Source: Orbicella franksi
Taxonomy: Eukaryota
Assembly (NCBI GenBank): GCA_964199315.1
Contig: OZ116710.1
Span: 2,108,001-2,172,000, forward strand
Reading direction: 5' to 3'
DNA length: 64,000 nucleotides
Notes under the pieces: model-generated
What the model was told of the DNA's origin: nothing
The model's database searches: none
What the model saw: the letters and a program-made list of their open reading frames with translations, nothing else
Program-made: the position numbers and the translations under genes
Shown here: positions 1,449 to 32,200 of the stretch, piece after piece
Numbering within the stretch: the first letter of the stretch is position 1
How the letters are laid out: every line of letters begins with the position of its first letter

Positions 1449-4400
1449 TTACAAAGTTTCGAAATCCGCTGGTCTTGTTTTCATCTCGGTCCTCTTCAAG
1501 GAGTATTCATGTCCCTTCCAGTCCTTCCAGTTCACACCAACACCAAAGGGCGAGGGATTTGTGTGATGATACTTGCCATTTAGGTTGGAGAGGTAACAAC
1601 CTCTGTACCACCAGGCTCCGTGAAACCTCGTGGGACAGCCATGGCCATCATTACCTTGATCTCGAATTGAAAATGGTTTACCTTCATAATAAGAGAGAGA
1701 GTCACCAGCAGTTCCTGCAGCTGATCGGATGAAAAAATGATTAACTATTGTAAGTAAGACAAAGTTAATAATGAAAATAAATTGTCCGAGTGAACGTGTT
1801 TACTTATGTGTGTTCGTGGAAATGGTGATAACACATTGTTCTATAAAGCTATGACGATCATGTCGCCCTAAAGAGAAAAATGACTAGACACATTCTTTCA
1901 TCACGAGAAACGAAGCAATAAATATAAATGTAAATGTAATGTAAAGCTCACTGTAGACCGTCGTGTAAAAAAAAAAGGAACAACTGAGTGAAAAAAATTC
2001 AATGTGAGTGTCTCATTTTGAAAATTCGAGAACGAGAGATGAGCTGAAGGTTTTCATTGGTCTGGAAGGTGTTATTTAACTCCCTCTCAAACTTTCAGCA
2101 GTCCTAGCTGTTGTTTTGACCCACCAGATTTTGTTGCGTTTCGATGTGTTTTTAACTCATGATCGATGAATTTACAAATTGTTGCTACAATCAGCAAAGG
2201 GACAGGAAACGACGCGAATCACCTAAGTATGAACCGAGGTTCAGCTTGTACTTGTTATTCTCATTCATAACACTGAACATGTTATACTCAGCATAAGCTG
2301 TATTCCCTTCAAAGTCTTCTAAGTCCACACGCAGCATGCTGTTATTATCTGAGGTCAGGCGGCGAATGTTTTCCAGTCTGAGCCAGAATTCACCATTCGG
2401 ATCACCAAAACCAACTTTGTAATCGCTCCAGTTAAGGAAAAATTCAACAGAACCGTCCACTCTCTTCTGGAATACTGTCCATCCCCCACCGGCTCTTGTT
2501 TGGTCACAAAACACATTAAAGGCAGGAAAATCGGCGTCAGGTTTGATGGTGTGCACACCGCCTTTTCTTTGACCAGATTTGTAGATTTCACCACAGTTAT
2601 AACCTGCAAGAGAAAAGAAATAATGAGAATTGCAATCTGGAGCGAGTTTGTTCCTGGAAGAAATTTGTTCATTTGTAGAGTCCCCGCAGGCGCAATTTAT
2701 GGCGAGGAAAAACGTCTCATAAATATGGCGATACGAACCGTTACTTTTGTGTAGCATCCATATGCAACTACGATTTCCATTACGAGTGATACGAGCTTTC
2801 GTACGACTACTCATTTATCATATGACTAAATAAAATACGAGGGCACCTGCATTAAGTTGCATAGCACTGTAATCACATAAATTGATCTGCTTTCAGCCAA
2901 TGACAGTGAGGTAATTTCTCCGTCATATAATAAAGTGACGATAGTTGGACTGAAGAGAATCCATATTCCAGGAGAAATTGGCTTTCAAAAATTGCAAAAT
3001 TTTCTGTGTGGCAAAAGTGATACTGAGCTCGTACATTCTTTGTAAAATTTGGAGTTTTTAAACCCGCGTCGCACACGGAAAGTATTCAATACTTCGGGCT
3101 CAAATTCCTTGGGACAGTAAATCATGCTATGCCCTTTCAGTATTCAGAAAAAATATTTTTGTAGCTCCATCAGAAACTGTATCGCTTATGCAATGAGGCA
3201 AATATTATACATAAAGATTATTCTATACAAGAGATAGCAGACGTTTTACACTGTTATTACAGCTTGCTCAAGTTTTACACGAAAAGAAGAGTCTACCTGA
3301 ACATGAGCGACCATCTCCAGTAAATCCTTCCTTACAAGTACAGTTATGTCCCCCAACAGTGTTGGTGCAGTTTGCATTCACGTCACAGTCATGGTTGCCG
3401 GTGATACATTCATCAACATCTTCATTGCAAACGATTAAGAAAGAACTGTACTTGTTAACTTTTGTTATAAAGTAGATGAAAGTGCTGAGACTTAAAGAAA
3501 ATTTCACGAGCTTAATTCTATTTTAAATAGAGAAGAAATCAACAAAGTCAAAACCCAAGTCATACTAAAACCAACACAGAAATGACATGAAAGATGATTG
3601 TCAGTAACCCTCTAGGTCCATGTCACAATAAACCAAAATTGCCGTTCGATTCGCAGTTGGATCCAGCCAGTACTTGCTGCTAATGGTGTCTTTGCCTTCG
3701 CTTGCCTTTATATCCTGACATGAATGCGCTGGGAGCTCCGAAATGGAACCCAGACGAACTTGGATCAAAAAAGAGAGAGAGAGAGAAAAAAAAATTACAA
3801 ATTTACCAATTATATTGTGGTTTCTATTATGATAAATACAGTGTTTCTGTCGATGGAGGCTGATAGCTGTCCACAGAAATCTTGTTTTTAATAAAATAAT
3901 AAAAACGGGGGAAAAGTTCATGATATCCGCGAGATACGCCGATATCGAAATAAACTAAATAACTACTTTCAGGGAACCGTAACCCAGAAAACTCCCAGGG
4001 ATGAAATTTGCGAAAATGTGGCAAATAGGGCCAATTAAAATTCGGCACCAGTTAGAGATTCTTCTCGAAGGAAAAAGCCCTTCAGGAGCATTTACGAGCA
4101 TTAAATTTTCGGGAAAACAACGTTTCATTACTTCGGGGAAATTTTAGGCATTAATAGAAATCGTAAGCACAGACACTTTTAAAACAACGACGGAAACTGG
4201 AAGTTTTATATTCTTCCTTTGGCGATAGCATTAGAGTTCTGGTTGATGTCCACCTCTCAAGAACGTCTGTGTTTAAGCTTCCTTAATTTTTTCGCACATA
4301 CCCCGGTTGCTCAAGCGTCGTTTGTAAAACCGTGCCGGGTCTGAGCGGAAATGTTTGGGTCTTGACTCCTTGGTGCGGTTATTCAGTTCGCACGACTTTT

Positions 4401-4611
4401 CTCCTAAGACGTAGTTATATCTTTGACAGGTGATTTCTGTTTCACAGCTGATATCGCACTCGTGAAGAGCTCTTACGAAGAACTTTTTCGCGATGAACCC
4501 TTGTAGAGCCATTCCATTTATGCTCCGTTTCTTTCTGCATTGCTTGCCAGCAGATACGCGATCCATAAAGAAGCCGGCGAAGAGAAAAAAACAGCGAACA
4601 GTCCACAGCAT
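1449..4611 (-). CDS. FReD gene A1: secreted PAN-like / fibrinogen-head-like / EGF_CA / fibrinogen C-terminal domain protein, 409 aa
   Basis: Exons 4611-4302, 3758-3609, 3419-3297, 2603-2223, 1714-1449; all GT-AG, all phase 1; 1230 nt in frame. Motifs DVDECITGNHDC, VFCDQ..GGGWTVFQKRVDGS, GEFWL, GAWWY, SNLNG, YSLKRTEM. Confidence 0.9.
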
Positions 4612-29262: not shown

Positions 29263-29290
29263 GTAAGATTGTTGCATGTCTTTACAAAGC

Positions 29291-32200
29291 TTAGAAATCC
29301 TCTGGTCTTGTTTTCATCTCGGTCTTCTTCAGGGAGTATTCATGTCCCTTCCAATTCTTCCAGTTCACACCAACACCAAAGGGCGAGGGATTTGTATGAT
29401 GGTACTTGCCATTCAGGTTGGATCGGTGACACGGGGAACTGTACCACCAGGCCCCGTGAAACCTGCTCGCACAGTGTACCTCTTCTTGCCCGTTCTTATG
29501 CTGATCATTATCTTGATCTTTAGTGGAAAATGGTTGATCGCCATGATGAGAAAGAGAGTCGCTAGCATTACCTGAATATCAAATTAAAAAATGAATAACT
29601 GTCATGCGAGACCGAGGTATTCTATATTCCGTTTAATTGTTCAATATTTTTCGAAAATTAGCCTGTTCTAAATGCCCCATATCCCATTATTCATGTTTCC
29701 CCTAAATATCTCATATCCCGATTTATTTTTACTAATATCCCATATCCCAGAAACGCCTAATAGGGCCACCTTTTGGTTGGTTTACGATACGCCTGGGGTG
29801 GGGAGGAGGGGGGTACGTCGGTAAATTTCGGATGTGTCCCAGGGGTCTTCAACTTTGACCCTATTTAAGGATGAAGCAAACGCCACCCTATCACGGGGAA
29901 AAACAAAAACCAAGAATAGCGTGAACGGTTCAACTAAATTTCGTTTCACTGGAAATTTCCAAATAGTTAAGTCTTAACAGATTTGTTTAGCTGGGCTACC
30001 CTACAGTAAAGAATCACACCGGGAATACAATGCCAACAGGGGCAAAAATAACACGCTATTTAAGGATCGACAACGTTAAAAACCATACCCTATCCCGCGG
30101 CATATATGCATAGCTATATAGCCCATATATGGGACTACCCCTCCCGGGACGATACGATTACATTGTAGAACGTTGGACCGTTGAAAGTTAATCCTTTTGA
30201 TATTCCCTGACGTCACTTTCGAATTCCTTATAAGGAAAAGTTAACAAGTACAATATTTGCGTGTTATACAGTAGATTGTCGTGTTTCCATGGTTTCACTT
30301 CAGTGGTCCGTATTGAATACTGGAATACCATTCGAAAGGCAAATTGCTTACTCTGGGTTTAATCGGTGATAAGTATGGACAGTTTATTTGTAGATAGCTG
30401 GGTCATATCCCATCCCATCCTGTCCCGGATTGTTTTTTCAGCCCTTATGGTGATTAAATCCCCCTTTCACCCTTGTAAGTGACTCATCGCTAACTCTTAG
30501 CTTCCATTTACAACATGTTATGTACAACATTTTGACCACTGATTGTTAAATTTTAGGCTGTTTGAGAGTTGAAGCCGATTAACCTTCGCAACTCTCGGTG
30601 AGAGTTGACAAATTTATTTTTCAATCTTTCAGAAGTCCTCGCTGTTGCTTTTACCCACTGGATAAAGGACAAAATTATAAGTCTGATAGGCCGAGAGAAC
30701 TGATCTTTTTTTCTTAGATTAAATCATCTGAGTATGAACCGAGTATCAAATTTATTTTTCAATCTTTCAGAAGTCCTCGCTGTTGCTTTTACCTACAGGA
30801 TTTCGTATCTACAGCTGTGTACACGAAAAAAGGACAAAATTATAAGTTTAAAGGCCAAGAGAACTGATCTTTTTTTCCTTAGATTAAATCACCTGAGTAA
30901 TTGCCGAGTTTCAGCTTGTACTTGTCATTCTCACTCATAACACCAAACTTGTTATACTCGGCATAAGTGGTATTCCCTTCAAAGTCTTCCAAGTCCACGC
31001 GCAGCATGCTGTTATTATCTGATGTCAGGCGGTGAATTTTGTCCAGTCCAAGCCAAAATTCATCATTCAGGTCACCAAAACCAACTTTGTAATCGTTCCA
31101 GTTAAGGAAAAAATCAACAGAACCGTTCAGTCTCTTCTGGAACACTGTCCACCCCCCACCGTCTGTTGTTTGGTCACAAAACACATCAAAGGCAGGCAGA
31201 TTATCAGGTTTGATGGTGTACACACCGTCTGTTGTTTCACCAGATTTGTAGATCTCGGCACAGTTTTTGTGCACTGCAGGAGAAACGCAAAATCAGGCCC
31301 AGAACTTGAGCTTGGGAGAATTTGTTTATAACGTTTTAGAAGTATGTATTTTCAGAAAATGTCAGAGTATACAGTCTCTATACCGATACCTTGATTGCAG
31401 GCTGTTTCAGTGCATTTAGTGGGACAAATACAACGAAAACCTTTATTGGTGAATCCAGCTTGACATATGCTATAGTTCAAACACGGGCTGCTGCTACAGG
31501 GATTCTGCTCAGAAGAAAATTATAGAGAAAAAAGAAAATTAAGTCCCATTCTATTGCAAAATCGTATTTGCTACTGCTGAAATTTTCCAGAAATAAGAAT
31601 AATTAACATCTAGGTAGTTATAAATATCTTTACACTATTGGTACATAGTATTGAAACGATTAATATTAAGGCGAAGACAACGAGCTTACTTAACAGCGAG
31701 TTTGATGATAGAAACACTAATTGCAATAGGGGGCTTATTGACCAAAACACATGTAACGAGATGCTTATCAGAAAGGGAGCTGTTATTGGAAGAAGGGCGG
31801 TAAATTGAATCACAAAGGTACCTACTCTTAAAACGTTTATTAAGACTGTTACCTCAATGGCCAGATAGGTGTAACTTGGTTCATTTTTAAGAAAGGTGAA
31901 AAACTGGTTTTCATCCGTAACGTTGTTCAACTCGCATTTGTGTGTTCCTCCCCTTAAAGGTCCCAAATTGATGGAGACACAGTTGGGCTCCATATAACAC
32001 AACACTCGACAAGTCCCTTCATTAGGGACTTCCTCACTCCTGATCACGTGATTCTTCATTGCTCTGTTTGCCACTGGTTCCTTGAATATGATGTTGCGAC
32101 CATCGTCGTCTTTGAAAAACAAAACAAAGCATAAAATTTATTAACTTTATGCTTATACAAAAGCTGATTTTTTTTTATAGGCCTGGAAGCGGAGTTTAAA

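Follow-up and report, generated by a model that had tools for sequence, protein, structure and literature searches.

Where do tandem copies of a coral lectin-like gene diverge, and does selection drive that divergence? We addressed this question in a 64,000-nucleotide window of the Orbicella franksi genome (contig OZ116710.1, hereafter C13; C13:2108001-2172000 of 497 Mb), the minus strand of which carries three intact genes (A1, A2, and B2) and one pseudogene (B1), all encoding a fibrinogen-related domain (FReD; Pfam PF00147) split between exon 4 and the last exon, exon 5. We also examined 100 kb of DNA flanking the window and a second array 200 kb away, for a total of 264 kb. The initial annotation dealt with the interval 1449-29571, which runs exactly from the last base of the A1 stop codon to the first base of the B2 last exon, and proposed that in-frame indels and diversifying selection on specificity are focused on the calcium- and ligand-binding part of exon 5. 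Our site-class tests of exon 5 and our mapping of variable sites onto the binding pocket support diversifying selection on this surface, with moderate strength, and we consider it probable that diversification in this birth-and-death family of coral FReD genes falls mainly on the binding surface of the P subdomain.

The first indication comes from the length of the Ca2+ loop, which we counted from the third acidic residue of the DxDxD motif to the next Cys, the first of the P subdomain. All of the loop peptides and post-WWY residues originally quoted are present on the minus strand: FSIRDQGNDGHG-C and RGCYL in A1, FSTCDQDNDNKEGGN-C and KNCHK in A2, and FSTKDQDNDQHKNGQEEVH-C and SSPCHR in B2. 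The loop itself has 3 residues in A1 (GHG, 1638-1646), 6 in A2 (NKEGGN, 11519-11536), and 10 in B2 (QHKNGQEEVH, 29474-29503), compared to 5 in human ficolin-2 and 5 in FIBCD1 (residues 396-400; PMC3908420). Aligned to ficolin-2, the A2 last exon shows a single gap, which corresponds to 1 extra A2 residue in the loop after DQDND. That the indels keep frame is borne out by the DNA, with differences among the A1, A2, and B2 loops of 9, 12, and 3 nt, and it extends to the 15 last exons compared across the cluster, where all length differences are multiples of three. Among these 15 exons, including further copies designated g and h, loops of 3 (A1, h7), 5 (h5, h7b), 6 (A2, g1, g2, h1, h2, h3, h8), and 10 residues (B2, g4, g8, g10) occur.

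Such variation is uncommon elsewhere. In two background sets, one comprising 151 motif instances drawn from representatives of 50%-identity clusters and the other 58 instances from the closest database relatives, the loop has 5 or 6 residues in 95% and 93% of cases, respectively, two residues separate WWY from the Cys in 97-98% of instances, and a 10-residue loop was seen once among other coral sequences. Because the background is almost entirely 5 or 6 residues, the loop variation of this cluster, in which 6 of the 15 last exons fall outside these lengths, is more than expected by chance and the cluster is unusually length-variable; yet only about two unusual indel events, along with toggling between 5 and 6 residues, account for it.

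Substitutions show a corresponding contrast between the two FReD exons. Exon 4 had been described as far more conserved, and in the same genes amino-acid identity to A2 is indeed 80-90% in exon 4 vs 56-77% in exon 5. For tests of selection we used 11 intact, non-identical paralogues from the 264 kb, leaving out near-identical twins; all come from one locus of one genome. Averaged over the 55 pairs, Nei-Gojobori (NG86) estimates of dN and dS are 0.059 and 0.21 for exon 4 and 0.21 and 0.31 for exon 5, such that dN is 3.6 times higher in exon 5 while dS is only 1.5 times higher. Omega lies at about 0.3-0.4 in exon 4 and about 0.7-1.0 in exon 5, with M0 estimates of 0.39 and 0.97, respectively.

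Site models place a class of codons with omega>1 in exon 5 and none in exon 4. Codon maximum likelihood was performed with our own implementation (GY94-F3x4), not with PAML or HyPhy; among 60 data sets simulated under M1a, the maximum likelihood-ratio test (LRT) statistic was 11.1 and only 2 of the 60 exceeded 5.99, and we therefore regard the implementation as calibrated. LRT statistics for exon 5 are 50.7 (M2a vs M1a), 63.6 (M8 vs M7), and 49.5 (M8 vs M8a), as opposed to 1.65 (not significant), 3.4, and 2.6 for exon 4. The nonsynonymous excess that the initial annotation anticipated is thus found in exon 5, where the M2a and M8 tests are significant, with a null result in exon 4. Several possible artefacts were examined. 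Misalignment of the loop is ruled out as the cause of the signal, which persists without the loop columns (LRT 37.8), and A1 is ruled out as its driver, as the LRT is 46.2 after removal of this gene. A single breakpoint inside exon 5 is likewise ruled out: analyzed on separate trees, the 5' half gives 25.2 and the 3' half 37.0, both significant; imposing the exon 4 topology gives 55.9. The pairwise homoplasy index (PHI) test detects no recombination signal in exon 5 (p=0.085 and 0.43) and a significant one in exon 4 (p=0.01 and 0.017).

Where the fast sites fall can be judged against solved structures. In FIBCD1, Ca2+ is bound by Asp393, Asp395, and the carbonyls of residues 397 and 399, adjacent to the Cys401-Cys414 disulfide, and the S1 ligand pocket is formed by Tyr405, Asn413, His415, Tyr431, Ala432, and Trp443, with Lys381 corresponding to Arg186 of tachylectin-5A (TL5A); these Ca2+ and S1 residues have equivalents in TL5A and the ficolins (PMC3908420). 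We transferred these positions to our alignment through ficolin-2, and offsets of +4, +13, +14, +30, +31, and +42 from the first Cys land on the expected ficolin-2 residues F, C, H, F, A, and Y. Thirteen exon 5 sites have an M2a posterior of at least 0.9: 4 loop residues, the two residues preceding the Tyr405 equivalent, the Asn413 equivalent, the residue after His415, and the equivalents of 430, 431, 439, 443, and 444, with 432 reaching 0.85. In A2, the KEGG segment of the loop holds the sites of highest posterior. Seven of the 13 belong to the FIBCD1 Ca2+/S1 set defined a priori (Fisher p=0.009), and 11 of the 13 lie no more than 1 residue from it (p=0.0004). When one synonymous rate is imposed throughout, omega reaches 4.2 in the loop and 1.9 at near-pocket sites, and is 0.52 in the other 56 codons. 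Mapped onto the FIBCD1, TL5A, and ficolin structures (PMC3908420), the fast sites therefore lie on the Ca2+ loop and the walls of the S1 pocket, as the initial annotation had envisaged, rather than away from the binding site.

The same pocket positions vary again within the young clade formed by g4, g8, g10, and B2, whose alignment is unambiguous because all of its loops are of equal length. Within this clade, the 35 near-pocket codons have 13 replacements and 4 synonymous changes, compared to 6 and 3 in the 56 codons of the rest of exon 5 and 20 and 19 in the 129 codons of exon 4. Across the 10-residue loop of these four relatives, there are 5 replacements vs 1 synonymous change.

A number of results weigh against reading this pattern as diversifying selection on the pocket, and several of them bear on a second explanation: that constraint is relaxed, with local rate heterogeneity or mosaic ancestry and no adaptive selection, the pocket segments simply tolerating change and owing their higher divergence, at synonymous and nonsynonymous positions alike, to an older ancestry that escaped the conversion homogenizing the rest. 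When gamma rate variation (4 classes) is allowed, the M2a vs M1a statistic for exon 5 falls five-fold, from 50.7 to 10.0, so much of the standard signal, which reaches 50-64 across models, is rate heterogeneity, and this heterogeneity could reflect mosaic ancestry. Given its own synonymous rate, the a priori pocket set has an alpha of 1.46 and a beta/alpha of 1.44, not significantly above 1 (p=0.28), and the loop alone has a beta/alpha of 2.3 (p=0.10); the synonymous rate of the pocket partition is 1.3-1.9 times that of the remaining codons. Fixed-effects likelihood (FEL)-type per-site tests single out only 4 sites in exon 5 at p<0.1 vs 3 in exon 4, although with only 11 sequences such tests are nearly powerless. 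Eleven paralogues from a single locus are a small sample, and with so few sequences the empirical-Bayes site posteriors are overconfident. Part of the contrast between exons 4 and 5 is due to gene conversion or module exchange, given the exon 4 PHI signal (p=0.01) and the difference in dS, and the trees of the two exon 5 halves differ in branch lengths. Pairwise omega over the whole exon, at 0.4-1.2, is not clearly above 1. Several observations nonetheless speak against relaxed constraint. M2a with rate variation still outperforms M1a with rate variation in exon 5 (p=0.007), and does so without the loop columns (LRT 7.3, p=0.026), while exon 4 gives 0. There is no PHI signal in exon 5, and replacements recur in the pocket of the young clade. 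Variable positions also sit among structural residues that never change, which speaks against constraint having simply been lost. We therefore describe the evidence for omega>1 in exon 5 as real but moderate, since the statistic drops under rate variation, the pocket beta/alpha is not significant, and the per-site tests are weak; relaxed constraint is a possible but doubtful account of the pattern.

It is quite improbable that decaying pseudogenes or assembly artefacts make up most of the variable copies, in which case their variability would have no functional meaning. Roughly one copy in two within the 264 kb shows visible damage, a 35.4-kb block of 99.6% identity might be a tandemly placed haplotig, and for A2, the copy for which expression was examined, we saw no spliced reads, and a poly(A) RNA run had no reads on its exons. 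A1 may also be decaying, given that it has lost one Ca2+ ligand and the pocket His. Its motif reads DQGND, the second acidic Ca2+ ligand being lost, Tyr replaces the His after the second Cys, and its stop has moved by 3 codons (..DFETL*): the old stop position reads GAA, and ETL is added before the next TAA (1449-1457). The expression results for A2 and the losses in A1 speak against the selective reading as well. However, all 11 copies analyzed have open exons 4 and 5, intact splice sites, and the Cys pair; every one except A1 keeps the acidic Ca2+ ligands and the pocket His, and the result is unchanged without A1. Exon 4 of the same genes is under purifying selection (omega 0.39), and independent DNA runs carry the sequence, both runs labelled "coral metagenome" and runs from three organisms. 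Two A2 last-exon differences are listed from other coral samples, at 11498 and 11597, and each is a synonymous third-position change, weak evidence that A2 is maintained; 49 further differences over the 5.9-kb A2 stretch fall outside those listed. It is very improbable that the FReD diversity here arises somatically, in the manner reported for snail FREPs (PMC4346834), in place of divergence among germline paralogues: each variant observed is a germline copy with a locus of its own, and fixed differences in the contigs of other runs are few, although contigs cannot reveal rare somatic variants. Diversifying selection at the binding surface is the explanation we favor.

What might such pockets bind? 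The initial annotation placed both Ca2+ binding and an acetyl-group site in the variable region. The location agrees with the binding site of ficolins and TL5A, but the canonical acetyl-binding residues are only partly conserved. Of the 11 intact copies, 10 have equivalents of Asp393 and Asp395 together with the two Cys and the His, the exception being A1, with Gly at the first of these two acidic positions and Tyr for His; both Cys are kept in all 11. The aromatic pocket (Tyr405, His415, Tyr431, Ala432, Trp/Tyr443) is not conserved across the 11 copies, His415 being its one generally retained member. The position of Tyr405 holds F, with R in A2 and g1; that of Tyr431 holds F, I, D, P, or H; that of Ala432 holds G, S, N, or A, mostly G; and that of Trp/Tyr443 holds H, G, N, R, or P, mostly H. 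Because the aromatic wall is not canonical, acetyl specificity should not be assumed, least of all for A2, g1, and g2.

The wider cluster bears the marks of rapid turnover. The genome contains at least 150 matches to the FReD last exon, and approximately 21 gene copies lie in the 264 kb, of which roughly 10 are broken, among them h1, h3, h8, and h7b by stops and g9 and h6 as fragments. In B1, a 7-nt deletion near the 3' end of exon 4 (21840-22222, minus strand) creates an in-frame TGA; its twin g7 shares this lesion, and we found no last exon downstream of B1 exon 4. The N-terminal portions of the genes come in two types, an A-type stalk (PAN-COLFI-EGF_CA) and a B-type stalk (PAN-EGF), and both stalks carry the 6-residue loop (A-type in A2 and g2, B-type in g1) and the 10-residue loop (A-type in g4 and g10, B-type in B2 and g8). 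Stalk type is therefore unlinked to last-exon type, which points to module exchange by recombination. Members of the 10-residue clade have a lower dS in their last exons than in exon 4, suggesting that this last-exon type spread recently onto different backbones, and the PHI signal in exon 4, along with its lower dS than that of the last exon, is consistent with homogenizing gene conversion. We also noted a one-codon insertion at the same place in exon 4 of A1 (PDADFPAF) and g8 (PDDYLCAF), where other copies read PDN-LPAF. A tandem duplicate of 35.4 kb, with 99.59% identity and a shift of 58,486 bp, pairs window positions 1-29231 (C13:2101801-2137231) with C13:2043315-2078760 and gives A1, A2, and B1 near-identical twins. 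Either a segmental duplication of very recent date or the tandem assembly of a haplotig could account for this block.

The genes themselves are regular in structure. A1 and A2 have five exons, encoding a signal peptide with a PAN domain, a short COLFI-like module, a calcium-binding EGF domain, and the two FReD exons; B1 and B2 combine a PAN-like exon and an EGF exon unlike that of the A-type with the same two FReD exons. Exon 4 (381 nt) is of phase 1-1, intron 4/5 is of phase 1, and AG/GT boundaries are canonical; the last exon opens with bases 2 and 3 of a split Gly codon and ends at the stop. On the PF00147 profile, exon 4 covers positions 2-131 (E ~1e-49) and exon 5 covers positions 137-220 (E=2e-20 to 3e-28), with scores that exceed the gathering threshold, and from these matches we judge the domain to be a bona fide FReD.

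All of the following features are on the minus strand. In A1, the last exon, encoding the P subdomain with the stop included, occupies 1449-1714 (PF00147 E=2e-20) and exon 4, encoding the A and B subdomains, occupies 2223-2603; the N-terminal exons span 3271-4611, with EGF_CA at ~3271-3420, the COLFI-like module at ~3604-3780, and the signal peptide, judged by eye, and PAN domain starting from the ATG at 4611 (Pfam PAN_1, COLFI, and EGF_CA/EGF_3). In A2, the last exon lies at 11339-11604 (E=5e-26 to ficolin-2; PF00147 E=3e-28) and exon 4 at 12327-12707 (PF00147 E=3e-49), and the N-terminal exons span 14753-16126, with EGF_CA at ~14753-14902, the COLFI-like module at ~15082-15243, and the signal peptide and PAN domain at 15779-16126. 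B2 has its last exon at 29291-29571 (PF00147 E=1e-22), with an extra Pro codon before the second Cys (WWY-SSP-C), and exon 4 at 30893-31273 (PF00147 E=1.5e-49). Its B-type stalk, without the COLFI-like module, covers 31355-32137 and consists of the EGF exon (31355-31519) and a PAN-like region within 31613-32137; both Pfam matches of this stalk are under the cut-off (PAN_1, E=5e-4, 20.2 bits vs 21.4; EGF, E=6.5e-3, 17.2 bits vs 21.5). Among named database proteins, the closest are those of the stony corals Oculina and Pocillopora. A word-index search with the A2 last exon returned nothing above 72% identity, and no full-length protein of this cluster was found among database cluster representatives.

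Run X15, which is labelled as metatranscriptomic RNA, covers the A2 introns as evenly as the exons over window positions 10900-16800 and shows no splice joints; given this even cover, it probably holds genomic DNA. Within an A2 intron, positions 13264-14445 are a high-copy repeat with contig depth in the thousands in all runs, and a 219-residue open reading frame inside this repeat, on the minus strand at 13378-14034, matches a MADF DNA-binding domain (E=1e-9). Elsewhere in the window, 44774-50098 (minus strand) is an uninterrupted 1775-residue open reading frame of a Pao/BEL-type long terminal repeat retrotransposon with DUF1759, DUF1758, RVT_1, Peptidase_A17, and integrase domains. Two flanking housekeeping genes are represented by a ubiquitin C-terminal hydrolase (UCH) exon at 51878-53121 (plus strand) and an AAA and Peptidase_M41 (FtsH/AFG3-like) protease gene at 56756-63528 (minus strand).

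Under the favored explanation, the cluster would be a tandem birth-and-death array of secreted, multidomain lectin-like genes (signal peptide, PAN, with or without the COLFI-like module, EGF, and FReD), in which the last exon supplies the P subdomain with its Ca2+ site (DxDxD and loop) and S1 ligand pocket. After duplication, copies would diversify mainly at this Ca2+/S1 surface, with in-frame indels resetting the Ca2+ loop to 3, 5, 6, or 10 residues and repeated replacements altering the pocket walls at the equivalents of FIBCD1 403/404, 413, 416, 430-432, and 443/444. Purifying selection would meanwhile hold the acidic Ca2+ ligands, the Cys pair, GAWWY, SNLNG, and all of exon 4, and unequal crossing-over or gene conversion would keep exon 4 and the stalks similar while moving last-exon types between stalks. 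The analysis covered gene anatomy, the rate contrast between exons, site-class tests, and mapping onto the pocket; from these we infer that selection for differing ligand specificity, in the recognition of pathogens, the microbiome, or symbionts, drives the diversification, and that the proteins are expressed lectins. A more elaborate proposal, which we regard as speculative and unlikely, is that the cluster forms a germline combinatorial repertoire in which at least four last-exon pocket cassettes, with loops of 3, 5, 6, and 10 residues and different walls, are recombined between the two stalks and the pocket is then selected, giving non-acetyl and possibly Ca2+-independent lectins that separate symbionts, commensals, and pathogens.

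Corals lack adaptive immunity, and their germline receptors must tell symbionts, microbiome, and pathogens apart. This locus names specific loops and pocket residues as candidates for how specificity diversifies and offers an example of tandem duplication, module exchange, and localized fast evolution acting together. Searches of the open-access literature turned up no account of this cluster or of selection acting on FReD pockets in corals, which is not proof of absence.

How does the cluster compare with known FReD systems? Among solved structures, human ficolin-2 (L-ficolin; PDB 2J3F/2J0G) gives the best match to the A2 last exon (E=5e-26), with which it shares DQDND, the Cys pair, GAWWYKNCH, SNLNG, and the positions of the S1 pocket residues. 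Its loop has 5 residues, compared to 3, 5, 6, or 10 in the cluster, and the Phe/Ala/Tyr of the ficolin-2 pocket are replaced in many copies. Ficolins have a collagen-like stalk, whereas the cluster genes have PAN and EGF, with or without the COLFI-like module, and in the absence of a collagen-like stalk membership in the ficolins is ruled out. FIBCD1 (PDB 4M7F/4M7H) and TL5A (1JC9) are also homologous (E=2e-25 and 1e-23), but only the acidic ligands, the Cys pair, and the His (not in A1) are kept between them and the cluster; FIBCD1 also differs in being a membrane tetramer.

Among invertebrates, tandem expansion, loop indels, and binding-site diversity have been described for the Anopheles FREP/FBN clusters (PMC1242226), and all three have been discussed for Biomphalaria FREPs and oyster FBG-domain genes (PMC4346834). 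Like the cluster, these families are tandem, evolve by birth and death, and show short loop indels and diversity at TL5A-site positions, with a presumed role in innate recognition. The cluster differs in being cnidarian, in lacking IgSF and coiled-coil regions, in giving no indication of somatic diversification, and in that its variable sites have been tested with codon models and mapped onto the pocket. Within Cnidaria, CniFL proteins, which combine Collagen, Ig, and Fibrinogen domains, are likewise putative FReD pattern-recognition proteins of variable copy number (PMC5094078). The N-terminal exons of the cluster have no Collagen, Ig, or IgSF Pfam match, their matches being to PAN_1, a short COLFI, and EGF_CA/EGF; CniFL membership is thus ruled out by the lack of an upstream Ig or Collagen match, and membership in the Biomphalaria-type FREPs by the lack of an IgSF match. 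The pattern described here is what one would expect of a family of innate-immune receptors undergoing diversification, rather than a new kind of system; it fits with the mosquito, mollusc, and other FREP families, to which it adds no new principle but a well-localized example and a set of candidates for glycan-binding and structural work.

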